Numbered from the stretch's first letter, positions 9,385 to 46,400 are shown. The stretch: DNA of 64,000 nucleotides from Lytechinus pictus (GCF_037042905.1 NC_087256.1:26474001-26538000); one strand, 5' to 3'. Numbers and translations: made by a program. The notes: generated from the sequence alone by a model not told the origin.

Positions 9385-9977
9385 AGGGGAATCCAGCCTT
9401 GACAATAAAAGTTGTGTTGGGAAGGAGAAAAATAAATCAAACAGAATGGTGAAAGTTTGAAAGAAATCAGACAAGCAATTAGAAAGTTATAGCTGCTTTA
9501 AAATTGAGATCACTAATACTATGTAGATTTCAAATTGGCAACTGTGTAAGTAAATTATGACAAGGGGCAAGGACAACTTTCCCATAGGCCATTTACTTTA
9601 TTATCAGGGATATGTGGTTTTCTCCTAAGTACCCATTCCCCTGGGGCATTTATCTAAATATAACCCAGGTAGTATATTTTGTTATGTCCTCATGAAAAAA
9701 AATATAATTTAAAATAAAACTTTTGGGAAAAATGACATTTTAGCCTTAACATGTATTGGAGTACATGGAAGAGTAGTCCTTGCCTTACATCACTATGACA
9801 TCCCATATGCGGCCAATTTGAAGTCTCCATGGGTATAGTGATTACCAATATTTACAACTTTTAAAAATTCATAACATTCTTGTTGCTTGTCCAATATTGT
9901 TCAAATTTTCACCCATCAACTTATCTGATTTTTCTTTTCCTTATAAAAACAAGTTTTTATTTGGGTTGGATTCCCCT
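9385..9977. mobile_element. Kolobok-type MITE, family B
   Basis: ttaa|aggggaatcca ... tggattcccct|ttaa; 5'-truncated copy at about 32320-32883. Confidence 0.8.
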
Positions 9978-10492
9978 TTAAGGATATACTTCTCATTCAT
10001 GTAATATATAGTTCATCATTACATTTAATGAAAGCCAATTAACTAGGCAGAGAGTTTTTGTATTCCAGCATAAAAAAGACATAACATATAGGACCTACCA
10101 AAAATATGTGATACGCTTGATATTCAACTGATAGGAAATTATGGAAAAAAAAATCATTTAAAAAAAGCAAAAAGCAAAAAAAAATATCTGCAGGGGTGTG
10201 TGTGTGTGGTCTGGCTGATATCTAATTTTAGAGTGTGCAGATCGAGGAACACCTTTTGGCTCATATACCCATATTTGTTATTGCCTGATTATTTTTCAAG
10301 TTATTTGATTGATTGGATCAATAGTAACTTTTCAATTGTAAGACGGGACCCTGAGGGGATCCAGTCAACCGAAAAGAGAGATAATAATAATTATAATCGG
10401 CATCAACTTATGAAAAACCGACTGTTGTTGCGACGCCCCGGCCCCAGAGCGACGCCCGGTCTGCTGCCCTCAACGTTATACTGTGATATATC

Positions 10493-10507
10493 GCGGGTAC
10501 TTTTGAA
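10493..10507 (+). promoter_or_regulatory. CDE/CHR-like cell-cycle element in the probable NCAPG promoter
   Basis: GCGGG, 4-nt spacer, TTTGAA in a CpG-rich patch; inverted CCAAT (gattgg) at about 10311; a splice donor follows at 10580. Confidence 0.55.
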
Positions 10508-10509
10508 AA

Positions 10510-10579
10510 TCAAGCCGAGCTGAGCTGTTGACTTTTGTGTGTCTGGGCCGAAGTCTGAAGAAAACACAAACTTTTTCAG
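10510..10579 (+). other. NCAPG: Probable non-coding first exon of NCAPG (5' end approximate)
   Basis: Donor CAG|GTAAAG at 10579/10580. The ATG exon has a strong acceptor (tctttccag, 13339), so an upstream exon is implied. Confidence 0.45.
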
Positions 10580-10767
10580 GTAAAGAATGTTTAGATTTAT
10601 CCTTGTCATTTACTTCATTCCGTGTATTAAGACAATGGCAGTTTTTACGTATAATTGAAAAACAAAATGATTTTTACAGCCGCACTGCCACTGGCGTCTT
10701 GCCTGGCTTGGCCTGGCTTGGGCTTGGTACGTTGTCGTTAAAAAAGACGTTAGCTCGGAGTCGGATA

Positions 10768-11716
10768 ACCCAGGGAGCTCCCGCCCGCGAAAACAGAAAT
10801 TATGCACTTACCATGATTATATTGATGAAGCCTGAATGTCTATCGAGTGGTAGTATCCTGACATCGAGGCACAGACTGGAACCTCAAAAAAAAGAAAAGT
10901 TCTCTCCTACCCCAGTCCTGATCACGATCATGTCGATCGGCCATTTTTGTTATACTTATAGGCCCTAAAATCATAACAAAAATGGCCGATCGGGACTGGG
11001 GTAGGAGAGAACTCGTTTTTTTGAGGTTCCAGTCTGTGCCTCGATGTCAGGATGCTACCACTCGATAGACCTTCATCCATATAATCGTGGTAAGTGCATA
11101 ATTTCTGTTTTCACAATTTATCTTCAGGATCTTGCTAGATATTTTGACCATAATCTACCCTTGTCCCGTGATGGGTAAATACACGGTTAGAGTAGACAGC
11201 TGGCAGCCGTCTGTTTCGAGGAGTTTTTAAACATTTTTTTCCCCTTAAATTTCTCCTCGTACACAGATGGCTCGCTAGCGTGCAGCCACCATTAGGGGAC
11301 TTGCAATGCAAAATCCCCCCGTCTGGGCTCTTCAATTTTTGTCTTTAATGAATAAAAATTTTGAAAATTAACGCGACCAAAATGCAAATTAATATTCCCT
11401 CTTGGCATATTAATTGCCAAAAAATGGAGAAAAATCAAGTTAAAAGGAACAAAAACAGTGACTTACCGCAGCTGTCGCGCAAATTCACTTCCCCGTTTTA
11501 TCCGATCTTAAGTACATAAACATATGGCCACCGGCCATTGAGTCCCCTGTACAGATCGCGCTAGAACTTCGGTCTCTGTATTTGGTGAGTGAAGCCAACG
11601 GAGAGTCGGAGTTCAGCTCAGCTGAACAACCAACATAACAGAGACCGAAGCTTTTGGTCTAATACACGGTGAGCTCCTGGGCGCCGGCCTGCTTCGCGGG
11701 CCAGCGCTCCCTGGGT
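10768..11716. mobile_element. piggyBac-type non-autonomous element with an internal long palindrome
   Basis: ataa|cccagggagctcccgcccgcgaa ... ttcgcgggccagcgctccctggg|ttaa; CCC/GGG termini; inverted arms at about 10789-11112. Confidence 0.65.
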
Positions 11717-11859
11717 TAATTCGGTGGTGGCCAATTTTGCATGTGACCAAAGTCAAGTTTCATCGCCGATCCCTGAAGTAAAAAAAAGTTCAATGTAAAT
11801 GTTGTTTTAATCGGCGGCGGACACCAATACCTAAAATTGATATCGGCAAAAATATTGAA

Positions 11860-12585
11860 ATGTTAAGTTGTTGTTTACCATATCTAAAAATTTAGGTGTC
11901 TTTTTGTCTGGAAATGTTTTAAAGTGTTTTGAGGTGTAATGAGTTAAAATATATTTGATATGCCTTTCGCTATGGACTCCAGTTCTCCTAGAAGAAATAT
12001 AATAAATCACACATTTTTCTGACAACCGCGGAAAAGAAAAAACAAAATAGAAGTCACAAACATCTCAGATCAATGAACAATCGATTGGGAATGTTTTAAA
12101 ATTGTTTTGAGGTCCTAACGAGTTAAAATATATTTTATATATCTTTCCCTATGAACTCTCTAAGAAATATAAATGATGCACTATTCTGAAAACGGCGGAA
12201 AGGATTATAAAACAGAATAGAAGTCGCAAACGAGTCAGATTAATGAACGATCTATCAGGCATTTAACATTGTTTTATGATGCTAACGAGTGAAATTTCAA
12301 ACTCCTTTGATTAGGAACTCTTGTTCTCCGAGTATAAATATAAATCACACATTATTCTGACAACATTGGAAAGGAATATAAAACAGAATATAAGTCACAA
12401 ACATCTCTGATTAATGAACGATCTACATGTATCAGAACAGGTGTTAAATTGTTTTGAGACGATAAAGAGTTCAAATACATTTTAAATACCTTTCGTTATG
12501 AACTTTCTAAGAAATGTAAATCACACATTTATTCTGACAACAGCGGAAATAATAAAAGAACCGATGTCACAAACATATCAGATCA
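11860..12585. repeat. Degenerate ~170-bp tandem repeat, about 4 copies
   Basis: aaatcacacatt..ctgacaac..aaacagaatagaagtcacaaacatctcagat recurs near 12005, 12175, 12342 and 12519. Confidence 0.7.
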
Positions 12586-12654
12586 CTTGGATTGTGAAGC
12601 GTCCCGGCTTCATAGGGAGGTATAAACCGGGGTATAAAATAATGATAGTATTAC

Positions 12655-13036
12655 AGATAAATTCCAGTTCTGGTAACGATCTCAAAATTACTTTTTACAG
12701 AATCTAATATAATGACCTTTTTTATGAATAAAAAATATGTGCCAAAGGATTCTGGAAGAAATTGTGTAATTGCTGAGAAATAAGTAAAATAAGTGCGGAT
12801 TCGGTCACTTCCGTCGGGTCTTTATTCCAGCAATAATAAAACACTGTCCCACGTGTGCCTATCTGTGTTGGTGATCTTCAGAGTGAACATTTTTCAGCGT
12901 AGATTTCAAGATTTCACGAAGTTCAGTTTATGTAACTGTACCAGATCTACATCCTCGATGATATACTGACAATTAAGCCTGGTTTTACAGACTTTCTCAT
13001 GAAATCAGTGTTTACTGCAACTACTGGCATTTCTCT
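12655..13036. mobile_element. Kolobok-type MITE, family C (uninterrupted copy)
   Basis: agataaattccagt ... actggcatttctct|ttaa; same family as 18201-30424 and shows the empty site ctgtacCAGatctac. Confidence 0.8.
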
Positions 13037-13384
13037 TTAAAATTGTTGAAGATTCATAACATATTTGTTAAGCGTTTTGATGCGATATCGATTTATGATA
13101 TAAAATCATTCTCCGAAAAGCAAAATGAAGCTCACAGCCAAAGCAAGTGATTCGTCCTTCATCATCAGGTACATTGCGTAATACCTTGGGAGACCCAGCT
13201 GGGCCATTGTGGGGCAGTTCGCCCCCCTTTAAGAGATTGTTCTGTTAATTTCAATTTCATCCCCTTGTTAATGTTGATGTTTACATGACATCCTAAATAA
13301 ATTGCACTACACATCTATGTGTTTTCAATTTCTTTCCAGACCATTTCTACGTTGCAAGTGTTCTATAAATAAAGTAGAAGCAGG

Positions 13385-13492
13385 ATGGCTCCAAAGCGGC
13401 AATACACCATGAAGGAGGTCTTTGAAGAGTGTCAACAAGGTCTTCATACACACAGCAAGTTGATGACAGCACTGCTAAAAAATTATCAGCAG
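13385..13492 (+). CDS. NCAPG: NCAPG coding exon 1
   Basis: MAPKRQYTMKEVFEECQQGLHTHSKLMTALLKNYQQ then gtaaaa. Confidence 0.85.
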
Positions 13493-16400: not shown

Positions 16401-19400
16401 TGAAAGAATAACCGAAATAGTACTAGTTATGATTGACAAGAATAGAAAAATTCATTGTAATAAGACCATTCATGGCCACATTAATATTATCAGAGGCATT
16501 ATCACGCAACATTGATTTGCCCCTTCTTGATTACTCACTGCGCTATAGCATACCTTTATCTGATGGAGAAGGATGTGAACTTTGAGGTGAGGAGAACAGT
16601 CCTGTCCTGTATCGCTCCTGCATCCCAGACCCTTCCAGCCATTCTGGAGCGAACCAGGGACATCAAAGATACTGTCCGTAAGATGGCTTATCAGGTAATT
16701 GCAGGGAATTATTTTTCTTACCAAATTTTATTAACATTTTTGGTTTTAAGAGAAATTCAATTTCTGTACAGTCTTAAATAAAAAATCTGCTACACAACAG
16801 ACTTTTTGTTCAGCAGTCTTTTTAAAAAATCTGGAGCAAATTGTGATGCGATACCTACATGTAAGCCCTGTTCCGTAAAAAGTTATTTCTATGGTAACTT
16901 TGCATTCCAATCGTAATTAGCATGGTAACATGACCAATCAGCCAATCAAAATAAAGAATTAATGAAAGTTACTATTGGATGGCAAAGTCGCTAGACTATT
17001 AACAGTACCTTTTATGCAATTTTGCCCTAAAAAAGTTATTCCCTGGGTAAAGACATTGTTCAATGTTAATAGTTGTAGTCCGTTAGGCTATTATTGCAGA
17101 CTGGTTTGACTTGAGCTATATTCTTTGTATGATTGCAAATATAGCTTAGCAAGCCCCAAATTTTGAACACTTTTTTTTTCTTTTACTATCTACATTGTAT
17201 GTTTACGTACATGTATGTTTATTAAGGGTTTTGTTTATATAATCATATTGACAAAAAAAATCATCACTTCTGGGCAGGTTTAAATTGTAAGAGTTTTGTA
17301 TGTGGTAATTCCATAAAATATATATGTCTGACCTCCTATATATGTACATGTATGTGGAACCTTCTTGAACTTATCTGTCTCTGTTTTCTGCATGTAGTTT
17401 ATAATTTGAAAAGTTGTTATTCCATCAAATCATCATGACTGGAGCTGTTCATAAAGGGAAATAAGAATGGAAAAACATGGGGGGGGGGCATGGACATTAC
17501 AAAATGTGGATTGTTTTATGGAATTGCCCATTGATAGTTGAATCTGTTTGACCCTGTTTGATTTGTTTGAATTTAGGTTCTATCAGAGAAGGTTCATGTG
17601 AGATCCCTCACCATATCACAGAGGATCAAAGTCTTACAGTCTGGACTCACTGATCACTCAGGTATGAAAGTGTTTTGAGTTATAATATGTTCAATTCAAT
17701 TCAATTCAATTCGGTTTATTAGATATAAAACAGAATACAATGCTGTAGTCCGAAGACTAATTGTGCAATGTTTACATTGATTATTATTTACATTTGAAGA
17801 TTGTATATACACTTAAAAAAATGATTCACATATAAATGAGAAACAGTTGGTTGATTAATTGAGTCATGCATAAGTGAGATTTCAGTAGATATTACTAGCA
17901 AGAATTCTGATAATTGTGTATTGGGGAAAAACCTGTTTTAAACTTACAATTATACAACAAAAAGGTCAGAAATATAATTCAGATTTGATATTCATTATGA
18001 AGAGATTTAGAATCAAGTTATTGCAACAGGATTAATCATAGTTATAGAACATTTAAATAATAATAATAATAACATTTGAGATATGAAATCCATTAAGAAT
18101 GGAACCAAGATTACTTTGAGATATGCGATTGAGGCTGATAAAATAATTCATAATAATTCTTTAAAAAAAATCAAAATTAACAATTAAATGTTGTGATTAA
18201 AGATAAATTCCAGTTGTGGGGACGATCTCAAAATGACTTTTTACAGAATTTAATATAATGATCACCAAAGTGTCTGTTTGTATGAATAAAAAATATGTGC
18301 CAAAGGATTCTGGAAAAAATTGTGTAATCGCTGAGAAATAAGCAAAATAAGCGCGGATTCTGTCACTTCCGTCGGGTCTTTATTCCTGCAATAATAATAC
18401 ACTGTCCCACGTGTGCCTATCTGTGTTGGCGATTTTCAGTGTGATCGTTTTTTAGCTTAGATATTATGATTTCACAAAGTTCAGTTTATGTAACTGTACC
18501 AGGGGCCTGTTTCACTAAGCGCTAAGACGCGTCTTAAGCATCCATAAGTCCGGTTATAGGACTTAGTGTAAGATGCATCTTAGCGGGAGTTTCACAAAGA
18601 CCACTAAGACGCGTACCGTACTTTGTACCCATTTAACTAAGTTGCATACAGAGCGTAGCCTACGTCTCGTCGAGACGAGACGTAGGAACTGTTCTTAGTG
18701 TAATGTCATGTGATAAATTTCGCGCCAAATTTGAAAGTTTTTTCGAATTCTCGATGATGGCCGACCTCCAAATATTGATGGCCGATCGGGTGGCCAGAGG
18801 GCTTTGTCGAGAGCGTGTTTTTCGCGACAGGCAAAACCCTCTAGATAGATTTAATGAGGATGAGATGTACGAGAGGTATAGATTTTCCAGAAGAGGTGTT
18901 ATGCAACTGTTAGATATCTTGGCTCCGCGATTGGATCGGGAGACATCCAGAAGCCATGCCATTGATGGACGGATGCAAGTGTTTACGGCGCTGCGTTTCT
19001 ACGCCAGTGGCACCGTGCACCACAACCATGGTGACCATCACGGCATCAGCAAGGCCAGCGCAAGCAGGATTGTCCGCCGCGTTAACCGTGTTCTGGGACG
19101 GATGAAAGATGAAGTCATCAAATTCCCAACAACCCCTGCTGAAGTTGCAGCCAGTCAAGCCGACTTCTACGCTGTAAGCGGTATGCCCCGAGTTGTGAGT
19201 GCCGTGGATTGCACTCACGTTTTGTTGAGGGGTGCAAGGTAGGTCTATTTCATTTGATATATTATAACATGTATTTAAAGCATTATAGAGCCTGTGGTAT
19301 GTCACACGCTAGGATAGGCCATCGGGGAGAGAGTACACCCTTATAAAAAGGTACCATGAAATTACCATGGTAACTATGGTTCTTTTTTCCAAATTACCAT

Positions 19401-22400
19401 CCACCATAAGAACCATGAAAACATGGTATCAAACCATGGTAATTCCATGCCCTAAAAATGATCATGAAATTACCATGGTTTGATACCATGATTAGGCTTA
19501 CCATGGTTTTTATGGTGGATGGTAACTTGGACAAAGACCCATGTTACCATGGTACTTTTTATAAGTGTTTGTGGGGTAAAATATTGTAACCATGCGCGTG
19601 TGAACAAACAAAATTGAATAACCTGCAAAAAGTTGCGCTGTGTAACATGTTAAACCCAGGTGTGGGTCCAGGGGGGGGGGCAGGGGGTCTTGCCCCCCCC
19701 CCCCCTCCTCGCCAAAGAGAGAGAGGGAGAGAGAGAGAAGGAAAGGGAAAGAGGAGAGAAAGGGAAAGAAAGAAGAGGAAGCAGAAAAGAAAAGGGGGAA
19801 ATAAGAAGATCGGGGGGTGGGGGGGGGGGCGAAAGTTCCTTTCCTCCCAGGCTGTTGACTCCCCCCCCCCCCAGAAAAAAAAACAAGAGAAGGAAAAGGA
19901 AAGAAAAAGGAAAAGAGGAAATGGGAAGGAAATAAAGTGGAAGAAGCCAAGAAAAAGGGAATATCAGTTGCGATTTTCCCCCTTAACAAGGTGTGGCTCG
20001 GGGGGAGCGGGAGGGGCCGAAAAGCTATTGCTTCCCCCCCCCCTTCCGTAAAAAAAAGAGAGAGAGAGATAGAAGGAAGGGAAAGAGTAGAGAAAGTGAA
20101 AGAAAGAAGGGGAAGCAGAAAAGAAAAGGGAGAAAGGAGATCGGGGGGCGCGGAAGGGCCTTGTGCCTTCCAGGCTGTTGCCTCCCCCCCCCCCCCCCAG
20201 CAAAAAAAAAAAGATAGCAGGAAGGAAAGGGAGAGAAAAAAGGAAAAGAAGAGATAAAGGGAAGGAAATAAAGTGGAAGAAGCAAAAAAAAAGGCGGATA
20301 TCAGTTGCGATTTTCCTTGCCAACAAGGGAAAGGGAAAATATAGAGGAAGAAGAAAAGAAAAGGGGGAAAATAAGGAAAGATCATTTGCGATTTTTATCG
20401 CTTCTTCTATCATCATTGTACAAATGTATTTATTTATTTATTTATGTCTGTTATGTCCTGTTTGATAACAAAAATATGAATATAAACTCATAACAGCAAC
20501 AAAACAAAATGGAGAAAAAACTATTTTGCAGGCAGAAAGAAACGTAAAAGTAATCTTACTGCAATGGAGATTCTAAAATAAATAACATAATGGTTAATTT
20601 TTTCTCAACATTTTGCAGGAAAAAATTCTAGTTCACGATATATGGTTAAATAATTTTCTATTAATAACTGACTGCAACTTCTTTATTCATTAAACCAATC
20701 CATAGATACGGAGACGACGCATACGTGTATGTAAATAGAAAACGGCAGAAATCCATCAATGTACAACTGATGTGTACCACAAAGTACAAGATCACCAATG
20801 TGGTTGCAAGGTGGCCTGGATCGACCCATGATAGTCGGATCCTCACACACAGCAACATTGCTGCAGAGTTTGAGACTGGCAGAAAGGAAGGCGTCCTCGT
20901 TGGTGACAGTGGATACCCCCTCAAGCCTTGGCTGATAACACCAATCCCAAATCCACAAACACCTGCAGAATATGCCTATAACAGGCAAGTATTATAATAC
21001 AATAAAATTGCAAACTCAACCCAAACTAGAAGGTGGTATTTCATAATATTGTCGAATCATCTACAATGCTATCTAGTGCAGATATTAATGTACCAATTTA
21101 TTAGAATAGAAGAAAAATAAAGAGGAAGAGCGGGTGGAATGGAATATGATGAAGAGAAGAAGAGAAAAAAGGTGAAGGAAGTAAGAGGATGAAGAGGGGC
21201 AAAAGAAAGACAACTTGAATACCAAAGGAAAGCGGTATATTTTAAACACTGTAATGATACTCGAGACCAAGCGTAACATTTTAACGTTATGCAATGTATT
21301 TATCACATTTTTGAAACTGGAAATATGTTGAAATTTTCAATATTGTCTTTCAAAAAGCTTCAAAAACCAAACTTGCTTCACATCTACTGTAGATAGCAAT
21401 GTCAAAATCCAAATAGCAAATCTGGCTCTAACTTAACATAAATTAGCAGTAGATCATTTGATAGTAATGGCAGGACCACCTGTTTATCGCTTTTATTTTT
21501 TTATTTCTCAGCGTTTTAAGGGAATTACTAGTGATTTAAGAGCAACATTCAACATTTTGAAAAGAACGTTTTTCATTTTATATTTTCAGAGCTCATCCAA
21601 AAACGCGGGTCTTCATAGAACAGGTGAACGGGCAACTTAAGGCAAAGTTTCCGTGTCTTGCTGTTGGGCTTCGCGTGGAACCGAAACACGCATGTCGTAC
21701 CATCGTTGCCTGCGCAGTTCTGTTCAACATGGCCAAAGAGATGGGAGAACCACATGACTACTTTGTTCAGCCTCCTCCAGATCCAGCAGATATCAATGAC
21801 TACCAAGGTCAACCTGGTGCAGTCGCCATTGCAGTTCGAGACCAAATTGTACAAGAATTTTTCTGAATGTTTATTTTGGTTCCAATTTTTTGAACTCTAG
21901 AACTTAGGAACGGAGTAAGGTATTGTGATGAAACTTGGTATTTGTATGTATGATTGTGTAAGTTTCAGGCGGAGGCATGTTTCTCAACTGCACGGTAAAA
22001 TTGACTGATATCTGAATTATCTCATCAAATCAAATATCACTATTTATTTAACAGTTTTTTCTACAACAGGATATATTCAGGCTGGTACACACAAGTTGTA
22101 CGTAATGTGACAGCAAATTTGAATTTGTTACATGCCAGTTATTTAACTTCATTACACTCAAAACTAGCAAAGAAAAGACAGCTTTTGCTGTGGATTGTCT
22201 GTAAAGCAGCAGTAGTATTTATTATTCTGATAAAAATAACATTCCATTTCTACCATAGTAGACCATAACCGTAGCAGATAATATTCTTCTTGATTGATAA
22301 GAGTAAAAACTTGATAATATCAAACAACCTAAATTACATAATATAGGAGTTGTATGATGCCTCACAAATGTTAGCTAAACATGTGGATATATTAAAATGC

Positions 22401-25400
22401 TCTCACCTGTCTACCCATTGAATGTCAAAGGTTTCCTGTTATTAACTAGTCTTTCGGTGTCATCACAAAATATCTTTAAAAATTTACAGAAGGGTGAACA
22501 CTAATAAATTATGTTAAATGGTGTGGCTCAGTTGATTTACAGAAATACTGTATTGTTCGTAATAGACGCACCCCCCTCCCCCTTATTCTTCACTTGAAAG
22601 AACAAATGAAAGATAGTTTCCTTGAATAAAATGGGTCTGCAGTTAAGTTTCCTGTTCACAAAATAATACAGTTACTAATTTATAAATGATGTCCGTGTTT
22701 TGATCAGCACGTGACCTAACGAAATTGAACTGAAATTTGGTGTACCTTTGACTGTTGTTATTTGTTAGTCTTAAAAAACATGACTTGATATATATGACAC
22801 AGAGACCTGTATATATCATATAATAAGACAGTAAAGGCTCTATGAAGTGTTGGGAACTCCACAAAATTTATGACAAAAATTCCCCTAAATTGCATAATGA
22901 AGTGAAAGAAGATATCATTTAACACACATTTATGCAATAGTTTTCAGAACAAATGTGTTAGAAGATAGATATTGATGAAAGAATACAAAATTGAGGTTTA
23001 CTGCGTACAACAGAAAACCTGAATTTTTTCTCTTCAATCATATTTATAATGAATATCATTCCAGAAGTGTCTCTTAAATGACATCCTCTTTCACATCATT
23101 ATAACAATTTAAGTGAAAATTTGCCATGAAATTTTTGGTGAATTTTCATCTCCCAACACTTTAGAGAGGCTTTAATAAAGGAGGAGCTGCTGAATATAAT
23201 TAATTTGGGAGGTTGCAAAATTCACCTCAAAATTTTGTATAACATTATGGAGAAAAAAATGATTAATAGCGCCCTTGCTGAGTTGAATTAAGGAGATCTA
23301 TGGCTGAGGGTTGATTTGCTAGGGTATTGTGGATACTCCTTAGCTCTTCCAAAATTGATTCGCTTACATGTAATTGCTTCTGTTTAACTATTAATTTGGC
23401 CTGTTGTATTCTCAGCAGCTCCTCCTGAATTTCTAATTGCCTGATCTGTGCAGGTCTCTGTGTCAAAATTTCTCGCGACTGATTAGACTGGATAGACCGA
23501 GGCTGAGGCTGAGGCAGAGACTGGGGTTGGGGCTGAGGCAGAGGCTGGGGCTGAGGCAGAGGCTGACACTGATAACCACTTGGGCCTGAAACATCTTCAT
23601 TATACAAGCTCAGATCCGTAGCCTCTGAATCCTGTTCACAAATACACAACAATATAAATTAATTCATAAAACAAGAAAAAATTGGTATCTCAGATTTTGC
23701 AATTGCTATATCAATGAATAGGAGTTAGCAACTGTGATTGTAATGAGTCAAATTTAACATTTTTAGTCTTCCTGAAAACTTTACAAATGTAAAGATTCCC
23801 ACAATTTTTTATTTACTGGTATGACCTAGTATGGTTCTGATTTTGTAAAATGGGACCAAAATGTTAACTGCCTGTGCATAACATGAAGACAACTAATGGT
23901 TTTCACAAGCAAAATAATTCTGACAAAATAAGACTGATGGATATTAGATGAAGACCTTATTATTGAACATGCCATCCAGACCCATCCCAATTTAAAGCTA
24001 TCATCACTTATAGCTCATGTCCCATAACACTTGGTATTGATACACATATTACTTCTGGAAGTCTCCTGGGGGAGGGGTTAGGGGGGAATACTCAGAGATT
24101 ATGAAACTGTAAGAATGCATGACACGCCCATTAATGAATAAACTTAAACTTTGCATAAAACGCCCATTAATGAATAAACTTAAACTTTTGAAAGATTCAT
24201 TTCTTTCTTATTTGCATTCTCAAACTTTCACTGAATTCTTTCTCTAATATTTCTGATTATATTAAAACCAATTTAATATTACCGGGACTAAAATAAGAAA
24301 CACTATAAAATTTCAATGCTTTTGAATGTCCTTAAAGAATACCTGTGAATTTTGCTCATCTTCTGGCAAGATTCCGTTGACAACTTCTTTGGCCAAAATT
24401 GCCAAAACTCGCTCGTGTATGTCATTGTTCTCTGGTGGTGGTCCACCACCTGGAAAGTAAAGAAATTGTAGAAATATATAATTAGGCATAAGAGTATTTG
24501 AAGTTTTGAACTATTGGGCTTTAACTTCAACAAGATTTCCACTGTATAGATGATTAAGATTTAGGACTGGCTGGGAGGGGGGGGGGGGCACACTCACATT
24601 GGGAAGCAGTACAGGTATGTGCCGCCCTCAAGAACACCCTTTTTTCAGGCAACTTTTCCGCTTCAGAGACACAACATTTCCAGCTCTTTTCAGTTCCAGA
24701 GACCCAACCTTTTATTTCAGACTTCTTTGGGTTTTTTTTTCTCTCAAAAAAGCTCTAAATCAGCTGAAAACTGCCGTTCCAAAGGACCAATTTTCAGAGA
24801 TTGTAGTTGCGAAGATTCAACTCAGGGAGGCACATAATACCTAACCAAATAATTTTTAAGTACCCTCCCAAGGTAATGACTATAGTATCCTCCCAAGGTA
24901 ATGGCTATCTGAAATTTTGCATCCCCAAAGAAAAACCAGCTTGACCCAGGCTAGCAGAGAGGTTATTTGTCTCATTGGTATCATTATGTACATAAATCAA
25001 ATACTTTGGATTTAATTGGCCCTGGCAAGAATTATTAGTCTGGTCTGTTAGCGAAATTATGTGGACACGGTGGACAAAAGCATGATTTTTTCTCCAGACC
25101 TTTGTTTATGTATAAGAATTAAAAATGGGGTATGCTCCAAAAAATGGTAACAGTGTATTATGGCAAAAATAAGGTACAAATCTTGCAATTAGAACTACTT
25201 CCTCTGTTTTCATCCGATTCTCATGAAATTTGGCACACACATTGGTCTTGAGGTAAAGATGTCTAAAACACATTTTTGTGTGTCTTTCAGAAATCTTGTT
25301 GCCATGGTAACAACATATCATTTGGTGAAAATTGGTTTAAAAAAAGATTTGTACCTTATTTTTGCCATAATACACTGTTACCATGGCAACACAATTTCCA

Positions 25401-28400
25401 ACACACACAAAAAATGTGTCTTGCACATCTTTACCCCAAGACCAAAATATGTATATACACACTAACATTCAACCCACTCCACCGCCACCCTTCGGCTTGC
25501 TTAGCATCTGCATTCAGATATTTAGTGCATTGAGATGCGAGGACAAACAGAACATCTGTTCAAAAAGGGTCTGATTTCAAGAACTAAACCAATGCAAAAT
25601 AATGCACTGCTATTGAGTTTTGCACTAGCGCTAGTCTATATATCAGACCAATCTAAACTCATAAATTCTGACATTTTCACCCATTTTTTCACTGTTCCTG
25701 CAGCCAGATTTTTTGGAGCATACCCCATTTTTAATTCTTATACATAAACAAAGGTCTGGAGAAAAAAATCATGCTTTTGTCCACTGTGTCCACAAGTAGG
25801 GTGTTTTTTACGCTAACAGACCGGACTATATAGAATAGTCAATTTGACCATTAATGCATCACCTGTCCCAATCTCTGGCAGGTGCTAAAACGTGGTAAAA
25901 TGAGAAGAGAAACCTTGTAGACATCTAGGTATTGTTTGTTGAATACAATTTGTCAGTGTTTTATATACATATTTCTTTTTGTTAAATATTTATATTTGTC
26001 TACTACTTTTATATTATAGTATAAATCCTAAAACTGTTCAAATTAACCCCAATCTCCTCTATTAAGCATCACACTTACCTGTCCTTGGGGCTTTATATGC
26101 TTTGGCTTTTGAAGCCATGTCTCGCCATTTCTTTCTCAATGTATGCCATTCTCTTTCTTGGCCACCAGCTGCTCTTAACGAATGTGTTGCTCTTTTCCAG
26201 GTTCTATGCATGGAAATAATGTGGAAGTAGACAAATTATAAATTTAGGATTGGTTGCACCAAGGGTCTACATGGGTTGCAAAAATAACATGGCTGTTGCC
26301 GTGTCACGATCTAAGCTTTTGGGCGTTTTGGATTTATTTGTAACTGATCGTTATAATAAGAGGGCGCATGACAAAAGTTTGCAGGATAAGGAGGGGTGTG
26401 TCACGTTGTTGCTAGTGTTGATTTTTTACCAAGGATGTAGATGCCTAGCACTGGTATGGAAAAAAAAGTTTCAATTGGATAACTGTACTTTTTTTTAAAT
26501 ACCTGAATAAGTGTCAGGTTTTCTAATTTATCAACAGACTACCATACCCTGGGATGAGATTCTTCGGTCGATCAGCTAAATTCCCCCGATTTCGCGATTT
26601 TAAGATTTTTTTCTCTTCTTTTTCCCCTTACACTAACCTTAACCCTCGCCAGGGGCATGCCCCCCGGACCCCCATTTAATCTTCCTCCTTTTGGAGAATT
26701 TCTCTGTCACATCCCTGCATACCTTTCTTTCAACTTTTCTTCTTTGCTGCTCCCCTTTCCTCCAGTTCCAAACAGTTCATGTTTCCTAGTGGCCACAAAC
26801 TGCAGGAGCGCTTCGACTTCGACCCTTTGGAAGTCCTTGCTTCTTTTTCTAGGCGTTTCCTAAATTTTTTGAGGAAAATGCATATTGTTATTATTTATCT
26901 TTATGAATTGCCCAACATCATGTCATTGCCTGTCTGTACACTACCAAATATGTTTATAGTATAGAGAGGGAGGGGGGGGGGGTAATGAGCACTATTTTTT
27001 ATACTCAACACCCCCCTTCCTCCCTTGAGAAAAATCAAAAAGATAAAATTTTGGTTAATCTTTTGTTTTTTTATGCCAGGGGTGGGGGCCCGGCCCCCCT
27101 GTTTCCCCACCCTGGATCCGCCATTGCAGTAATGGGTGTCACATTCAATGATACATAGAGTCGGATATCATACTCATAGACTATATTCATGTACAGTAGA
27201 CCTATGTATCGTCTGGCATCATCATGATCAAATTCAGGGGCATGTAATTAATTAGACAGTGTGAATAGAAATGAGCCATAGTACTGCCATAGACTATATA
27301 GAGATCTAGGTCTAGTCTACATCCACACTATTTCTCACGTACGACCAATTGTGTACATCTAGGCCTAGAATCTAAAAAATATTAATTTCAATTTATAATA
27401 AATAGGTCTAGACCACTGGCGTAAATCCCGGGGGGATGGGGGGATATATCCCCCCCACTTTTCGAGGAGGGGGGAATGGCCTGTACAAACATCCCCCCCC
27501 CCCACTTTTTACGAAAGAAATAAAAAAAAAAATCACAAGAGATAATTGTATTATTGGTGAAAATTCTTCCAAAAATACCGCTTAACAAATAAAACAATAT
27601 TATTGAATCATAAAATGCAAATAAAGAGCCAGTTCACCATTTACAAACGAAATACTTATGTCCTTATTATAACATTGAAGAGAAACCCCCGTTTCTTCCA
27701 ATTCATCAATGTTGGGGTCTTTGGGAAGGGATTAAGATGGAATGTCAAAATTTTTTGAATGGAATCTCTAATAAAACCATTAAACCATCATGGGGTAAAA
27801 AAGATAATAATATTGGAGGGGTATTTGCCATATGGACATACAGTGGCGTAACTACGGGGGGCATGGGGGGCACATCCCCCCCCCCCCCCATCGGCTGACA
27901 AAAAAACGGGGAAAGGGGAAAGGAGAAAAGAGGGAGAAAGGAAGAGAAAGGTAGTGGGAAAGAAGAAAATATTATTCATTATAATGTTATATTATATTAT
28001 AATTATGTTATGTTACATTACATAAGAAACATATTTATCATAAATTCATGAAACATAATTTGCCCAGGGCCTACGTCTTCATTGTTCCTGGTGCTCGCAT
28101 TGTCTGTTTAACGCGATATATAATCCTGTTGTACTAAAACATCCCGTTTTCAAGTCAATATAAACCAAATATATTTCATAGCACTTGAGTTATCATTGTT
28201 TTATGTAGTGACATATGCTTCTTTTTCACGACTCAAAAAGTGATTGCCCCATGTTAAGGTCTTCGTATATATGAAACATTTCCTGTCCGTGATTACGTTC
28301 GCATTGGTGGATTGGTGAGATATGTCTGCTTTTCATAAATTCCTAAAATCAGTCCTTAAAATGTCCCTTCTGATCTGAATATCAAAAATGTTCAGCTCGC

Positions 28401-31400
28401 GCTTCGCGCTCGCATCATTTGGTTAATGAAATACGTATGGTCCTAGTTAATTCTTACAAAAAAAAACCTTAGAATGCCCCACTGCAGGTCTGAATTATCT
28501 AAATTTTCAGCTCGCGCTTCGCGCTCGCATTGTTTAGCGAGACAGGTACCTCTCATGTTTACACAAATTTGGTTATAATGTCCCTTTTAAGGTGTGAATA
28601 TAAAAAAATTTCAGCTCGCGCTTCGCGCTCGCATTATTTGATCAGTGAGATACATATCAGTTTAATGACATTGTCCTTAAAATGTCTCTATTAGGTCAGT
28701 TTAACTGGCAACTGAGCGCACTCACTCAGTGATTCAAAATTTTTGCTGGTGCCCCCCCCCCCCCCCATGCCGTGACCCACGGTACGCCACTGTGGACATA
28801 TCAATGGCAATTCCTTGCATATCTAAAAACATGATTGCAGAAAAAATGCCAAAATATTTCAGTCATCCCCCCCACCCATCAACACGGATTTACGCCAGTG
28901 GTCTAGACTAGTCTAAATCTAGGTCTATAATGAAGAAATATTTTCAGTTTTATTGCTAACAGTAACACTAACACTAAGAGTAACAGTTACATTAACAATC
29001 TTGTCCAATTAAGTTCTAGGCTAGAGGTCTACTTCTATTCTAGTTCTACTAGTAGGCCTAGTATCATCTACTGGAGTCTAGACTTCTAGTTCTAGATCTA
29101 TCATCTAGATCTAATTCTATGTGACTGTCCCCTGGCCCTGTTAGATCTAGAAATCTACTTGATACTGGTAGTACTGCCACTGCCACTGGTACTGCTACTG
29201 CTAGTATTGATTATACTTTTTATAGACCCTGTCCCTAGATCTAAATTAAAGACTAGAGTAAGACTAAGTTGCTCACTAAGGACCGTAGGTCAGGAGTAGG
29301 CCTAGACCTAGAGAGTCTACTACTACTTGTCTAAAAGTTAGGGTAGGCCCTATACTAGTCTAGGCCCCAACTAAAAGTCTATAGTAGTAAGTGTAACTTG
29401 TAAGACTAAGTCTAAGATTAACATTAGATTTAGATCTAGATCTCTACTAGTACTAGTACTAGTAGTAGTAGTATCCAGAAGTACTAGGCCTACTTGTAGG
29501 CCTAGACCGAAAAATTATGTCTCTTTAGACTTTAACGTTAGACTTTACGACTTTAGACTTAGTTTCGTTTGTTAGCCTCCGACTCCGGTCTGATGGGGTA
29601 GGGTCGGTCTAAAGAGAGGAGCCGGCCCTATCCAAATCAGAGGTTAACGAACGAAAGAGACAGAAATTTTCGGTCTAGGCCTACTGCCAGTACCCCGGGC
29701 CAGTACTGATACTAGACCTAGGCCTACTACAACTTAGTCTAGTTAATATAATAGTTTGGTCGTGCATGAGAAATAGCGTGATTGTAATCATCCACAACCA
29801 CAGACTGACAGCGGGCTCGCTACCGCCACACGCACGGTTCACTGCCAATTAATCTAATATTATTCAATCGGCCGCGATTCGTCGAGGTACCGGTATCAAA
29901 TACAACTTCCATCACAAACTTCCACTGCATACATTTCACTTTCAATATTTTACTTCTATGTTGTCTTAACTTAAGAAAAAGGTTAATACCATACCTTCCC
30001 CATTATCTTCCTACAGTAGTCAAAATTATGTTAAAGTGACAAAATTCCTCCTCCTTTCACTTTTTAGTCGCAGACGATGCACACGAAAACTTGCGGGAAA
30101 TTACTACTTTTTATCTTCACACAAGGTCGAAGGTCACGAAATTAGGCTTCGTAGACTCAAAATCCAGACGTTTTATTGTTGAAGACGCGTCGCACACAGG
30201 ACTTAGTGAAGAACTGTTTAGTGGAACTGACGCACCAACAGGACGTCAGTAAGACCCGTCTTAGTGTATGACGCGTCGCAGCGACACTAAGTCCCGTCAC
30301 ACTAAGTACTGTTTAGTGAAACAGGCCCCAGATATAGATCCACGATGATATAGTAATACTTAACCTTGGTTTTACAGACTTTCCCACAAAATCAGTATTT
30401 TACTGCAACTACTGTCATTTAGCTTTAAAGATGAAGGAAAGCAAACCTGTTAGTAGTTAACACTGATTTCATGAGGAAGTCTGTAAAAACCAAGGTTCAT
30501 TGTCAATATATCATCATGATCTAGACCTTGGGGGTGTTTCACAAAGATTTAAGTATGACATAGAGTCGCACTTAAATGCCTAGATGCGCGCGGTGTAAAA
30601 GACATGACCATATTGGTCAGATCATGCCAAAAGCACTACTGCGTATTGGTCAATTAGATTGTGCGTTGCATTTCATATACGTGTCGGCATTTAAGTGCGA
30701 CTCTATTAAAGTCATACTGAAATCTTTGTGAAACACCTTCTGGTGCATTTACAGAGACTTATTTTTTTGAGAAATCATGAAATCTATGCTGAAAAAGATC
30801 ATACTGGAGATCGCCAACACAAATAAGCGCATGAGGGAAAGTGTATTGTTATTGCTCGGAAAATGACCTGACAAATTGCTAAAATGTCTTGCACAATTTC
30901 TTGTCTAATAGACCAGTTCGTAGTTACTCATGGACAATTTTCGGTCAAATGACCTTTCATTTCTTTCATTATGATAGGCAGATTTCAAAGCAAAATATTA
31001 CGTAAGCTTGCCTTACATAGCAGGATGAAGAAATTGACTAGACCAGGTGACTAGAATAGGGCACCAATGAACACTTTATGAAGGTATTTGTTGCATTCCT
31101 ACTTTGAATGCATATCATAGCATGTTGCACAATGTACTTGGCAAACTGTGAAAACCAGGACGCGTTGTTGTTTTTTGTGGATGTAAATGAAAACCACAAT
31201 TCAAAAGAATATATTATGAATAATCAAGGCATCAAAGTTGGTGCTTATCTCATTAGATTTTAAACCATGTCACTTTAGTACAAATGACCTTCCTCTGATC
31301 ATGCGTAGAACCTTTTGATCATGCGCAGAAAGGAACTACGAACTGGCTTATTCTTTGGCACATATTTTTAATTTATACATACATTTACATACATCTGGGT

Positions 31401-34400
31401 TGTCATTTTATTTGATTCTGTAAAACTCATTTTGAAATTGTTACCATAATTGGCATTATGAACCCTTATCTTTCCTTTGGCAAGGTGTTAATCTACATGT
31501 TCATTTGCCACTCCCATTTATGTGTTGTCCAAGGATACCAGATGGAAAAGAATCACTTAACCCTAATTCTCCCGGGGGGGGGGGGGGCCATTATGGCCCC
31601 CCCCCGCTTGACAATTTTCGCGATATATCTGCTGCGCAAAATTTTTTGACCTCGCCGCTCACTGACTTTTTACTTTCAAGTCTCGCGCAAATTTTGAGAC
31701 CAAATTTGTGACGCCCGGGTACGCGGTTACGACATTACGCAACATTATGTAAGTGCATGTCAGACCCAAAATTGCTCATAAACGTGATTTCATGTACAAA
31801 TCCAATGCAAATTGTGTATTTGGCCAAAATTCATAAATGTATCATTATTTCTACTTTTAATGATTAAACTTAATTAATTTTGCCTTGTTTATGATCAGAA
31901 TTAAGTCTGGAACGATTTCCATCGAAAAAACAATAAAAAACAAAAAGTAAAAAAACAAAGAAATACATAAGAAATTTAAAAAACAATAAAATACATAAGA
32001 AATCGGTCTTGGTACCAGATTTTTTTTCATTCACAATTGTTAGGAATGCTATAAAGAATATTTTCACCAAAAAATAGCATTCTAGGAGCTTTATTTAGTG
32101 AATCAGAGCAAAAAGTATGATTTCATGAATAAATTAGCATAATTAATTCATATAAAATAAAAATATATGAATTCAGTGAAATTTAACAATGCAACTGCGT
32201 AGATTACGTCATTCTCTACCATCATGCAAATTTTTGTTGTGATCGCGCAATCCACGGCTGAGATCTTAAGGGGGGGCCATAATGGCCCCCCCCCCCCCCC
32301 CCCCCCGGGGAATGACAAGAAAGGAGAAAAATAAATGAAACAGAATGGTGAAAGTTTGAAAGAAATCGGACAAGCAGTAAGAAAGTTATTGCTGCTTTAA
32401 AATTGAGATCCCTATTACTATGTAGATTTCAAATTGGCAACTGGGTAAGTAAAATATGATAAGGGGCAAGGACACCTTTCCCATAGGCCATGAACTTAAT
32501 TATCGGGGATTTGTGGTTTTCTCCTAAGTACCCATTCCCCTGGGGCAGTAGGCCTAATCTATATAAAACCCAGGCAGTATTGTTTTATATCCTCATGAAA
32601 GAAAAATATATTTGGAAGTAAAACTTTTGAAAACAAAATGATGTTTTAGCCATTTTATGTATTGGAATAGATGGAAGAGTAGCCCTTGCCTTACATCGCT
32701 ATGACATCACATATACGGCCAATTTGAAGTCTCCATGGGTATAGTGATTATCCATATTTACAACTTTTAAAAATTCATATCTTTCTTATTGTTTGTCCGA
32801 TATTGTTCAAATTTTCACCTATCAACTTGTCTGATTTTTCCTTTTCCTCCAAAGACAAGTTTTTATTTGGGTAGGATTCCCCTTTAAAGGCTTGAGCACC
32901 TGATCCTGTTAGCCGTGCCATGCCATAGCCATAGTAATAATTTGCAGGTCTTAAGAATATTGTATTAATCAGATGAAAATTATCATTCATTTAATCTGAG
33001 TTTGACAAATTACGGATAAAAAATCTGCACTTAGTATTAATGAAAAATAAATAAAAAATAATATTTTGACGGGCACATCATCTTCTCCAGGTGGTAGAAC
33101 AGGGCCCCATCTTACAAAGAGTTGTGATTGATCCGATCAACCACGACTATGGATGGCCAGCAATGTCACGATCTAAAATGGAAATTTGTTCAAAATGTTT
33201 TTTAGATATCCATAGATATCCATCGTTCTCTTGCAAATTCAGTGTGCGTGCTGCTTTTTGTCTCGCCCACCAGAGGTGAAGGGGAAATTTAGGGATCCAA
33301 ATGTAGTCCGTCCGTCCGTCACAAATCTAATGACACATAACTCCACAACCGTAAGTTGCTTTTCAACCAAACTTGGACGGTAGATGGACCTGGGGGACCT
33401 GCATGTTATGCTGCAGTCGGAGGTCGCATGGTAAGGTCAAAGGTCATTTTCAGGTCAACGTTAAAGTTTACATGCAAGACTCTCTTATGACACCTAACTC
33501 CGCAACCGTAAGTCGCTTTTCAACCAAACTTGGATGGTAGATGGACTTGGGGGACCTGCATGTTACGCTGCAGTCGGAGGTCACATGATAAGGTCAAAGG
33601 GCATTTTCAGGTCAACGTTAAAGTTTACATGCAAGACTCTCTTATGACACCTAACTCCACAACCGTAAGTCGCTTTTCAACCAAACTTGGTTGGTAGATG
33701 AACTTGGGGGACCTGCATGTTATGCTGCAGTCGGAGGTCACATGATAAAGTAAAAGGTCATTTTTAGGTCAACGTTATTTACATGCAAGACTCTTATGAC
33801 ACCTAACTCTGCAACCGTAAGTCACTTTTCAACAAAACTTGGATGGTAGATGTACTTGGGCAACCTGCATGTTTTGCTGCAGTGGGAGGTCACATGGTAA
33901 TGTCAAAGGTCATTTTCAGGTCAACATTTAAGTTTACGTGCAAGGCTCTTATGACAAGTGTTATTCCATCCCAGTCATTTCACAATGAAGTTTCAATACA
34001 ATTCTGTTGCGTGCCCTCGCAAATCACGATATTTTCTGGTTATTTTCATAAGTGGGCGAGACACAAAATCACTTTTGCCTTGTTTATAAAGGACATTCAG
34101 GATTTTTTTTGTAGAAAAAATTATGACATTGATGGATTTTCTAACAGTTGAGGTTGATTGGATCAATGGTAACTCGTGGAAAGGGGGCCCTGGGCCCCGT
34201 TGTACAAAGAGTTACGATTGATCGGGTCAATCGTAACTCTATGGAAATCCATCAGTGTCAATTTTTCTACAGGAAATTTGCAAAATGTCCTTTGTGATCA
34301 AAGGAGAACACTCCAAATTGTCAAGAAATCATTGAATTTATGGATATGGATATGGATTCATAATCTAGAACTTTTTTTTTCCATAGTTGCGATTGATTGG

Positions 34401-43400: not shown

Positions 43401-46400
43401 TTGCGTAATTTCGGAACCGCGTACCCGGGCATCGCAAATTTGGTCTCAAAAGATGCGCGAGACTTAAAAGTATTAACTCTGCGAGTGGCGCGGTCAAAAA
43501 ATTTCGCGCGGCGGAATAATCGCAGAAAATGTTGAGGGGGGGTTGATTCAACCCCCCCCCCCGGCCATTTTAGGGTTAAAGTTGCTCTTGACTTAAGAAC
43601 AGCTTTATTAAACGGCCCCCAGAACAATAATTCTACAATATTTCTCCTTCTTCATGTATCTCCTCATCTTATATCTTTTACACAGTCTTATAATACCAAT
43701 TGATGAGCTGTCTTGTGAGAGTGTATTATACTGGCGCTGTCTTGTTGAACATGTTCGATCCAAGGGAGACGATATTCTGATGGACAAGCTCCTCCCTACC
43801 GCCTCTGCTTTCTGCGACTATGTCCTCAAGTAAGATATTTAACTGAAGATTGATCTTAGGTCCGTCTCATACTCTGCGATCTGATGCAACGCGATTTTTC
43901 AAGAAATTGCATTTTGCATTAAATATGAAGTTCCAAGAAGTATATTCAATTCATATAAAGTTTGGCATATTGTTAGGAAAACTGAAATCATATTTTTACT
44001 TTGCGACAAGCCCTATGGTCGGAGTAAAGTCCAAATCTGCTTCAAGTCGCAGCCGATGATGACGTCATTACGATTTGGAAATTTTGAATTTGTTTTTATT
44101 CATTCAGGAAGGCTCTAACTGGACTGAATTTTGATTTTCAGTAGTCCTACCACTATTCTGAACTCTGATCCATAATATTTTATTAGTTGGAATATCCATA
44201 TCAAATGTTATCACAATTAATTTGAAATTCGGATTGCAACAAATCGCATAGTATGAGACAGACTTTAGGTGGGTGTTTCATTAAGCCGCTTGAATGTTAA
44301 GAGCGACTTTGTAAACAACGGGGGCCCGTAACACAAAGCTTAGCAATCATCGTTTCACGATTGATTGCATTGACTACAATGTACAATTCAAGCTTATGAT
44401 TAATCGTAAACCTTTGTGATGCTAGACCCTGATGACCCTTTCTTCGGAGCTAAATCAACAGCAACAAAATTTTGGTGTATGACATTTTCTACAAAAAAGG
44501 GGTCACCAGTCATTCATAAAGTCGGGCATAACTTACAAACAGCTTTATGAAACAGACCCCTGGGCATTTTCATATTAAATAAAATGATCAATTCATCATA
44601 TGTATGATAGGAACTTTAAAATAAAAATAATCATGTTGATATTTCTGAATACTCAAAGTCTTTGATTAAATTGCTCTAAAAACCCATTTGTTTAAAAATG
44701 CTTCCCAGTAGTCTCCTCTCATTGTCATGATATTGTTTCTTTTATCCCTTGTCTTTTCCTGCTCCATGTAATCGTTCTTATTTCCTTTCCTCAACGCCTT
44801 GAGCACATAATCAATATGTGTTTGGCTCTTTAGAAATACTCTATATCATTATTATTATTAATGTTAGAAACTGCAATGAGATACAGACCAACGTCCATAA
44901 CATGACGGCCGTGGAGAATTCCTTGAGCAAGGAGTTTGTAGCCGAGCATCTCCTCAAGATGACCGCCAGCCTGGACCAAACAGATGAAGTTGGACGGTAA
45001 GCCATTTCCTCTTTCTCACTGATATTTTGTAAGCTTACGCTTCATTACTTACAAAGATTATGCAATAAATATGCAGTTTGTTGCAAGCATCAATATCAGT
45101 GGGTGGATAGAGCTTCCACCCGCTCTTTTGAGACCCACCGAAAACAATAAAAGTACACCAAAAGGTCAAGCGCGCACAAAGTTCCACACTTTTCTATCAC
45201 ATGTGCATGTGCATACGTGGAGTATTTACGCGTTGGTATGGGCCCATATACTGTTTATTGCGTCATGGAGTACATGTACTTTTCCGTCGGCCTCTAAGGT
45301 CGTGCGTGCGAGCGTGCATACAAGCTCCATCCAGCTTTGGGTATCGATGACTGCTAGAGACATAATTTAGATGATACACAGTAGTGTGGGCATCAGGGAG
45401 AATTGCTCTTTCCAATACCTGTAGAAAAAATTTTAATGCCCAAGGCTATAGCTGATTTTTTTATGTGTGTATTTTTCTTAATGTGTTTTGAATATACCAA
45501 GTGTGGATAAAGTGTTTGATACCCTCACTGATGTCTATTATTTGTGTAATAATACCATTTTGTATCATCATAACAGCTTCTCTGCTAAAGCCATGGTAAT
45601 CATGCTGCATTACTTTAGAGCGCTCAGAGACTTTTGATAAAGGGGAAGTTCACCCTGACGGAATGTTTATTGTAAAATAATAGGAGGGAAAATAATAAGT
45701 ATTGGTGGAGGTTAGAATTTAATCCTTTAAAGATTTAGAAAGTAATAAGGATTTTAAGTTTTTGATTTGTGACATATTAATGGTTCATGGTGACTAAAAA
45801 TGCTGTCAAATCATGAACCCTGATACCAAGCGAGGAATTTACTAATATCTAAAATCAATTCTAAAATTAGGTAAAGTCAATTTTATGAGATCTGGGGCCC
45901 ATAACACATAGCTTAGCAGTCATCATACAACATTTTTTAGGATTGATTGCATTGACTACAATGTACAATCAATCCTAAACATCAAGCGTACGATTAATTG
46001 CTCAACTTTGTGATACGGGACCCTAGGGCCCATAACACTATGGTTAGCTATGATCATAGAACATTTTTTTAGGATTGATTGCATTGACTACAGTGTACAA
46101 TAAATCATGAAAATCAAACATATTATTAATTGCTGACCTTTACAGGACCTGGTTGGTCCACTGGTGCTTGAAATGGATTTGAGTTTTCAGTGCATCAACT
46201 CCAGGTTAATTAATGTCCACTTTTTTTTACTTTGCAGGAAGAAGCTTGACAGCCTTGTCCAAGACCTCCTGATCGCCCCACACGTGCCCCCGTCCCTCGT
46301 AGCTATCCTCGTAACCCGTCTTAAAGATTTCCATAGCGAAGATGAGGAACGGATTGAGCTGATGGCTCAGATTATATCTGACATCAGGGTACCGATTACT

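Follow-up and report, generated by a model that had tools for sequence, protein, structure and literature searches.

A conserved palindromic site of predicted E2F type ahead of the transposase gene in an echinoderm clade of Harbinger transposons

Results

We analysed a window of 64,000 nucleotides from the sea urchin Lytechinus pictus (GCF_037042905.1 NC_087256.1:26474001-26538000; positions are counted from its first letter), in which a full two-gene PIF/Harbinger transposon lies within an intron of the host gene NCAPG (Table 1). The element encodes a transposase and a Myb-like protein; a palindromic double match to the binding consensus of the cell-cycle transcription factor E2F precedes its transposase start codon. 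A first-pass annotation of the window had proposed that both transposon genes carry E2F-type promoter motifs which echo the promoter of the host cell-cycle gene NCAPG. The three motifs that it named are indeed present at 18718-18735 (transposase), 30100-30093 on the minus strand (Myb) and 10493-10507 (NCAPG).

The transposase-side site

The 12-mer TTTCGCGCCAAA ahead of the transposase gene is a perfect palindrome composed of two inverted half-sites and matches the E2F consensus TTTSSCGC / TTSSCGC on both strands at 18718-18729. At 18717-18729 the 13-mer agrees letter for letter with the overlapping double E2F site known classically from the DHFR promoter, which serves as the core of probes for electrophoretic mobility shift assays (TRANSFAC R01928). 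On the plus strand TTTCGCGC (18718-25) is followed by CAAA and then by TTTGAA (18730-35). The site is located 25-36 nt 5' of the transposase ATG, and the last sub-terminal repeats lie before it. The conserved start codon at 18754 only follows after it, so that the site is non-coding; the N-termini of homologues begin with MAALQIL, which corresponds to the window ATG at 18754/18757. The first-pass annotation had pointed out that translation from the in-frame ATG at 18703 would make the motif coding. This reading was rejected, as that codon occurs only in the two sea-urchin copies and is absent from 6 of the 8 elements compared below, while homologues start at 18754.

Window-wide, TTTSSCGC is not enriched (5 matches compared to 2.3 expected, with 5 being reached in 9/100 shuffles). 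Within the 11.8-kb element all three TTTSSCGC matches sit at most 100 nt upstream of its two start codons, and the probability of at least one match in the shuffled region between terminal inverted repeat (TIR) and ATG was 0.035 for the transposase side and 0.014 for the Myb side. The E2F block is single-copy and restricted to one end, unlike the sub-terminal repeats ACTTAGTGT and GTTTCAC, which occur at both element ends; near the other end the sole match is the non-conserved TTTCCCGC. A sea-urchin site of the P3A2/NRF1 type (Y-N-Y-GCGC-W) was also considered and dropped, because the flanks misfit on either strand. A further match to TTTCGCGC is found at 43490-43520, where it extends to TTTCGCGCGGCGG in a CpG-rich patch adjoining a poly-C/G tract.

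Conservation among related elements

For comparison we used eight elements, i.e. the window copy and seven relatives with 5' regions, at a transposase identity of 62-90%. Three relatives belong to Strongylocentrotus purpuratus (L002), the sea cucumber Apostichopus japonicus (L088) and the brittle star Amphiura filiformis (L089); the other four (L001, L003, L004 and L086) are metagenome or unplaced contigs. A TTTnGCGCsAAA core, the conserved site also being written TTTSGCGCSAAA, was present in all eight elements, 20-85 nt ahead of the ATG. The version TTTCGCGCCAAA is common to Lytechinus, Strongylocentrotus and Amphiura, and the remaining versions are TTTTGCGCCAAA, TTTAGCGCCAAA, TTTGGCGCGAAA, ATTGGCGCCAAA and TCTGGCGCCAAG. 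The GCGC core and its flanks are invariant in these eight elements from at least three echinoderm classes, and the leader between site and ATG (18 to 85 nt long) cannot be aligned among them. Where substitutions occur, the consensus is still satisfied or one half-site remains perfect (TTTGGCGCG, TTTAGCGCC, ATTGGCGCC); they hit degenerate positions, and at least one perfect TTTSSCGC half-site is retained in 7/8 elements.

We aligned the whole region from TIR to start codon for five lineages, and 33% of the columns are invariant. Among the 12-mers of this alignment the block 18719-18730 ranks second in conservation (10/12 invariant). It is surpassed only by the terminal repeat (11/12 invariant) and ties in rank with the internal TIR-like GTTTCAC repeat. 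A strict match was observed in four of five independent close lineages compared to 0.03 expected from dinucleotide shuffles, with per-sequence shuffle P values of 0.008-0.036 on the transposase side. A tree built from the N-terminal exon unites the eight elements in a single group (support of 88 in the Shimodaira-Hasegawa-like approximate likelihood ratio test, SH-aLRT) with one change of state. Echinoids, a holothurian and an ophiuroid thus retain the site although their transposases have diverged by about 2 amino-acid substitutions per site. No relatives were found in scans of genome contigs and viral contigs. The transposase-side block is probably a conserved E2F-type promoter element, for which binding is predicted.

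In a sister clade, the Amphiura filiformis locus L005 carries at 9900-10000, in a promoter-like region before the transposase ATG, a CCAAT box, TTTCGCGGAAATTTTCCCAC, TATATAAA and TTTGAA. This order in a 47%-identical lineage may represent an E2F-like arrangement, with a decayed counterpart at the same place in L087.

Neighbouring conserved features

The site is preceded by an E-box, TCATGTGA (CATGTG; MiT/TFE- or USF/Myc-type), whose spacing is constant in seven of the eight elements (L001, L002, L003, L004, L088, L089 and the window copy) and whose stretch is invariant at 8/12 alignment positions. The same letters can also be read as a minimal start-stop pair, ATG-TGA. An upstream ATG occupies the E-box position in 8/8 elements, and in L086 it opens an upstream open reading frame of 15 codons. 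Further upstream, a near-perfect palindrome is probably a binding site for the element's own proteins, and the sub-terminal ACTTAGTGT and GTTTCAC repeats are likely binding sites of these proteins as well.

The hexamer downstream of the E2F site

In the window and in S. purpuratus, the arrangement TTTCGCGC-CAAA-TTTGAA places a canonical CHR (homology region of cell cycle genes) in tandem with the E2F site at a distance of 4 nt. The window contains a single copy of the composite TTTSSCGC-N4-TTYGAA, and 0/100 dinucleotide shuffles contained any. The six other elements have ATTTGT, ATACGA, ATACGG, TTGAGT, TTTAAG or TATTCA at the CHR position, and none of these six hexamers matched a described CHR (TTTGAA, TTCGAA or TTTAAA) or CHR-like element (CLE). 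The CHR is thus not conserved among the eight elements, and TTYGAA is not enriched. In validated promoters it is the CHR that is conserved (PMC4176359). Human S-phase genes are driven by E2F and E2F/CLE sites with the common motif TTSSCGC, and for a canonical CHR to follow an E2F site is an exception among them, known from one gene (PMC5716687). In our elements the hexamer is not conserved, so that constraint is confined to the E2F part. The first-pass annotation is partly supported, in that a non-coding site of E2F type stands ahead of the transposase gene; it under-described a palindromic double site, and the CHR that it had proposed is kept only in the sea-urchin copies.

The Myb-side motif and the NCAPG promoter

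The E2F-consensus 8-mer TTTCCCGC ahead of the Myb gene belongs to a variable patch. S. purpuratus has TTCCCCTT in its place, in a copy that is otherwise 91% identical and in which no E2F-like word was found between TIR and Myb ATG. In the sea-cucumber copy a relaxed E2F-like TTTCGCGG precedes the Myb ATG by about 45 nt on the opposite strand; it differs from the Lytechinus motif in position and strand and does not align with it. This comparison comprises three sequences (Lytechinus, S. purpuratus and A. japonicus), as the Amphiura locus stops short of the Myb 5' end; in the sister-clade Amphiura locus Myb exons were not detectable. The Myb-side shuffle P was about 0.04-0.05 per sequence, and no CHR was found near the 8-mer. 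E2F-like sites on the Myb side in two of three copies are suggestive at best, and the proposed matching element of the Myb gene did not hold up well, given the S. purpuratus sequence and the unalignable sea-cucumber site.

The GCGGG-N4-TTTGAA pattern upstream of NCAPG is expected 0.41 times per window and was contained in 38/100 shuffles, so that this motif is not above chance by itself. The supposed echo of the host promoter comes down to a chance-level pattern at a candidate promoter. The pattern lies at the edge of a CpG-rich stretch at 10400-13200 (observed/expected about 1.0-1.1), which begins sharply at 10,400 and reaches the exon with the NCAPG start codon (coding start at 13385). This stretch fits a candidate unmethylated promoter plus first intron.

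Genes of the element and their expression

The transposase matches DDE_Tnp_4 (PF13359; Pfam 8e-19; HARBI1-type) and is 89% identical to an S. purpuratus 'putative nuclease HARBI1'. Its three exons join to an open frame of 346 codons (346 aa), which was checked for stops and frame only. In a spliced RNA contig exons 1 and 2 are joined at 19236>20704 as GT..AG with the cut shifted by 2, and intron 2 (20982-21589) has the splice pair GC-AG (CAG/GCAAGT) in spliced contigs from two runs, the joint being obtained after a 3-nt shift. The Myb gene starts with MGK followed by GT, as recurs in S. purpuratus (annotated CDS start) and A. japonicus. Its Myb_DNA-bind_5 domain (PF13873) is divided over two exons (7e-7 and 0.015), and the exons were matched by tblastn to the annotated Myb genes of L002, L088 and L089.

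Transposase exons gathered essentially zero reads in two ribo-depleted raw RNA runs of the species, and two other runs yielded contigs with spliced transposase forms at low depth. There is low-level transcription of the element somewhere. Transposase intron 1 contains at 19650-20400 a purine-rich minisatellite with a period of about 165-170 nt and long G and C runs. Poly-G/poly-C low complexity at 19.8-20.4 kb draws hundreds of RNA-seq reads, which results in false depth.

Structure and insertion of the element

The assignment to PIF/Harbinger is based on the DDE_Tnp_4 transposase, the Myb/SANT-like second gene, the TIRs and a 3-bp target-site duplication, all of which were found. The TIR GGGCCTGTTTCAC is present at both ends, and over 18498-30329 the element is colinear with an S. 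purpuratus locus bearing HARBI1-like and Myb_DNA-bind_5 genes (~66-97% identity by segment). The empty site is seen in contigs of other host-repeat copies, which pass from 18502 directly into right-flank sequence; the insertion is confirmed because these contigs show uninterrupted copies of a very abundant host repeat. The A. japonicus copy is flanked on both sides by CTG as target duplication. Since the duplication is CAG here and CTG in the sea cucumber, the clade may have a target preference for CWG. The element is nested inside an older inverted-repeat element, with flanks at 18239-18451 and 30792-31425 that form inverted repeats of 34-81 nt. The left of these flanks reaches extreme abundance in one run, with contig depths that sum to about 6,700.

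Table 1. Positions of the features discussed, in window coordinates (TIR, terminal inverted repeat; CHR, cell cycle genes homology region; CDE, cell cycle-dependent element)
Feature	Position	Strand	Remarks
Candidate CDE/CHR GCGGG-N4-TTTGAA (GCGGG-TACT-TTTGAA)	10493..10507	+	5' edge of CpG-rich stretch upstream of NCAPG
Left copy of the CAG target-site duplication	18500..18502	.	right copy at 30329-30331
Full two-gene PIF/Harbinger element	18503..30328	.	11.8 kb; inverted repeat I17; within NCAPG intron
Left TIR GGGCCTGTTTCACTAAG	18503..18520	+	partner right TIR at 30311-30328
Palindrome CTACGTCTCGTC-GA-GACGAGACGTAG	18659..18684	+	near-perfect, 12+12; kept in 8/8 elements
E-box-like TCATGTGA	18706..18713	+	4 nt upstream of the 12-mer; constant 7 nt from GCGC core
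Palindromic double E2F site TTTCGCGCCAAA (predicted)	18718..18729	.	TTTCGCGC on plus strand, TTTGGCGC on minus strand
Canonical CHR hexamer TTTGAA	18730..18735	+	4 nt after E2F 8-mer; sea-urchin lineage only
Transposase exon 1	18754..19238	+	conserved start MMADLQIL; homologue N-termini; RNA contig joint 19236>20704
Transposase exon 2	20706..20984	+	DDE_Tnp_4; followed by GC-AG intron; contig joint 20981>21587 in two runs
Transposase exon 3 to stop codon	21590..21866	+	spliced contigs, frame check
Remaining Myb/SANT-like coding exons	23266..26859	-	lying within 26859-26710, 26235-26065 and 23658-23266
Myb-like gene exon 1, coding part	29995..30003	-	ATG GGG AAG, then GT donor; ATG at 30003-30001
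Single E2F-consensus 8-mer TTTCCCGC	30093..30100	-	90 nt before Myb start; not conserved

Discussion

We propose that the conserved block provides the transposase gene with an E2F promoter element of the S-phase type, a prediction from sequence in which our confidence and our doubt are about evenly balanced. The 250-bp 5' end of the element would comprise the transposase promoter and leader, with the palindromic site TTTCGCGCCAAA and, ahead of it at fixed spacing, the E-box TCATGTGA. Host E2F/DP would bind the site and activate transcription in cycling cells, and Rb-family or DREAM complexes would repress it in resting cells. Transposase mRNA would then appear around G1/S in proliferating cells, e.g. 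in cleavage embryos or the germline, and such timing would allow excision to be repaired from the sister chromatid and copies to be gained by a cut-and-paste element. As the DNA specificity of E2F is conserved among animals, the same should apply in sea urchins. The promoter arrangement would be of the S-phase 'E2F' type (at most E2F/CLE), not of the G2/M type with a CDE (cell cycle-dependent element) and a CHR, and the sea-urchin CHR and the single Myb-side E2F 8-mer would be lineage-specific additions of uncertain value.

The double site of the mammalian DHFR promoter is located directly 3' of the major transcription start site. Our site resembles it (ATTTCGCGCCAAA; TRANSFAC R01928) by the identical 13-mer, the palindromic inverted half-sites and the position near the gene start, and differs in its carrier, which is the transposase gene of an echinoderm DNA transposon.

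Several observations weigh against an E2F promoter element. L004 fits the consensus at 7/8 positions only. In the sister lineages only near-matches occur, namely TTTCGCGGAAA in Amphiura L005 and a decayed version in L087. Among 31 distant Harbinger lineages from metagenomes (33-50% identity) the strict site was found in none, and neither strict nor relaxed patterns were enriched, on which grounds we rejected the site as a general Harbinger feature. From the tree grouping and the lack of enrichment in these 31 lineages it follows that the site is under constraint in a single echinoderm clade and not in Harbingers generally. The expectation that the motifs are conserved is thus borne out for the E2F core in the 8/8 related elements, and fails for the CHR (2/8) and for the distant Harbingers (0/31). 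Finally, constraint is all that conservation proves, and it does not tell which factor is involved; the E-box and the upstream palindrome are kept too, and the block could serve another purpose.

Such another purpose is the strongest alternative, although we consider it rather unlikely: the block may be functional and act through a bHLH-ZIP (basic helix-loop-helix leucine zipper) protein on TCATGTGA, an NFI-type half-site TTGGC, another reader of the GC box, the element's transposase or Myb protein, or an mRNA leader in which ATG-TGA throttles translation. Conservation does not single out E2F, since E-box, palindrome and GCGC block are all kept. In addition, the upstream ATG stands at the same place in all eight elements, and TTGGC is contained in the conserved TTGGCGC. 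However, the allowed changes fit an E2F palindrome better than a TTGGC half-site, as the S positions vary between C and G, a perfect TTTSSCGC half persists in seven elements, and L086 reads GCGCGAAA without GCCAA. The block is single-copy and confined to one end, unlike the sub-terminal ACTTAGTGT and GTTTCAC that mark the likely protein-binding sites of the element, and a GC palindrome of 4-6 bp would form no stable RNA hairpin.

The first-pass annotation had favoured control of both genes by DREAM/MuvB via E2F/CDE sites, with a CHR 4 nt away on the transposase side and co-expression in S/G2-M in parallel to NCAPG, which we now regard as improbable. It agrees with the exact E2F-N4-TTTGAA in the window and in S. 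purpuratus, with TTCAAA (an inverse CHR) 6 nt after the site in the Amphiura copy, with the 8-mer 90 nt before the Myb ATG and the restriction of the element's E2F matches to its two gene starts, with the E2F-like TTTCGCGG that precedes the sea-cucumber Myb ATG by about 45 nt, and with human NCAPG being a listed CHR gene. Yet the CHR position is unconserved in six of the eight elements, whose hexamers match no described CHR or CLE. The Myb side lacks a CHR, its motif has been lost from the S. purpuratus copy, which is 91% identical and has an annotated intact Myb gene, and the Lytechinus and Apostichopus motifs, differing in position and strand, cannot be aligned. The NCAPG pattern is at chance level in a promoter that is itself only a candidate. 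Known E2F, E2F/CLE and CDE/CHR promoters (Mueller, Engeland and colleagues; PMC5716687, PMC4176359) likewise have a hexamer placed 4 nt downstream of their E2F site; in the sea-urchin copies it is the canonical CHR TTTGAA, but here the hexamer is unconserved among elements. DREAM/CHR co-regulation of both transposon genes is not supported by the sequences.

That the match arose by chance and is present in relatives from shared ancestry alone is very unlikely, for short motifs, an insignificant window-wide TTTSSCGC count and CpG-rich sub-terminal regions (observed/expected 1.2-1.45), which raise the odds of GCGC words, stand against a core kept in all eight elements despite an unalignable stretch of 18 to 85 nt up to the ATG, a block that ranks with the TIR in conservation, and four matching lineages of five where shuffling predicts 0.03.

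A predicted E2F promoter element leads to a broader and more tentative idea, which we hold with less confidence than the prediction itself. The whole echinoderm Harbinger clade may keep its transposase wired to the Rb/E2F G1/S programme of the host via a DHFR-type double site, dating from before the split of the classes or spread by horizontal transfers, with single lineages adding CHR or Myb-side E2F-like sites.

Mobile elements have been connected to this axis before. MITEs (miniature inverted-repeat transposable elements) of Brassica and Arabidopsis carry and amplify E2F sites, to which E2F was shown to bind in vivo (Henaff et al. 2014 Plant J, via PMC5950925). They share with our element consensus E2F sites in DNA-transposon sequence, but they are non-autonomous and were studied for effects on host genes, whereas here the site lies in the promoter region of an autonomous element's own transposase and is conserved across animal classes. 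The mammalian LINE-1 (long interspersed nuclear element 1) promoter recruits E2F/RB, mainly for silencing through RB-HDAC/NuRD (PMC4727354); here, too, a mobile element's own promoter is tied to the Rb/E2F axis, although LINE-1 is a retrotransposon. In the rice PIF/Harbinger element Ping, of the same superfamily, expression of the Myb-like and transposase open reading frames increases jointly in 3-day embryos, the stage at which mPing is mobile; control of Ping was linked to an intronic single-nucleotide polymorphism and to position or dosage effects, with no E2F element described (PMC4055405). In the literature library that we searched, no report was found of an E2F site in the transposase promoter of an animal DNA transposon.

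What this would mean for the transposon can be stated briefly. For a cut-and-paste element, movement leads to additional copies only when it takes place around S phase. The links between transposons and replication known to us act on the DNA or on the transposase protein, not via a host cell-cycle promoter element, and we know of no described case in which an autonomous cut-and-paste transposon times its own expression to replication via a core cell-cycle transcription factor. To our knowledge, little is known in general about transcriptional self-control of autonomous DNA transposons in animals. If our prediction is true, a deeply conserved E2F site in the transposase promoter would provide a simple transcriptional route to replication timing, for which sea-urchin embryos offer a convenient system for a reporter test. 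Each new insertion would in turn seed the host genome with another ready-made E2F site, which is what the plant MITEs do.

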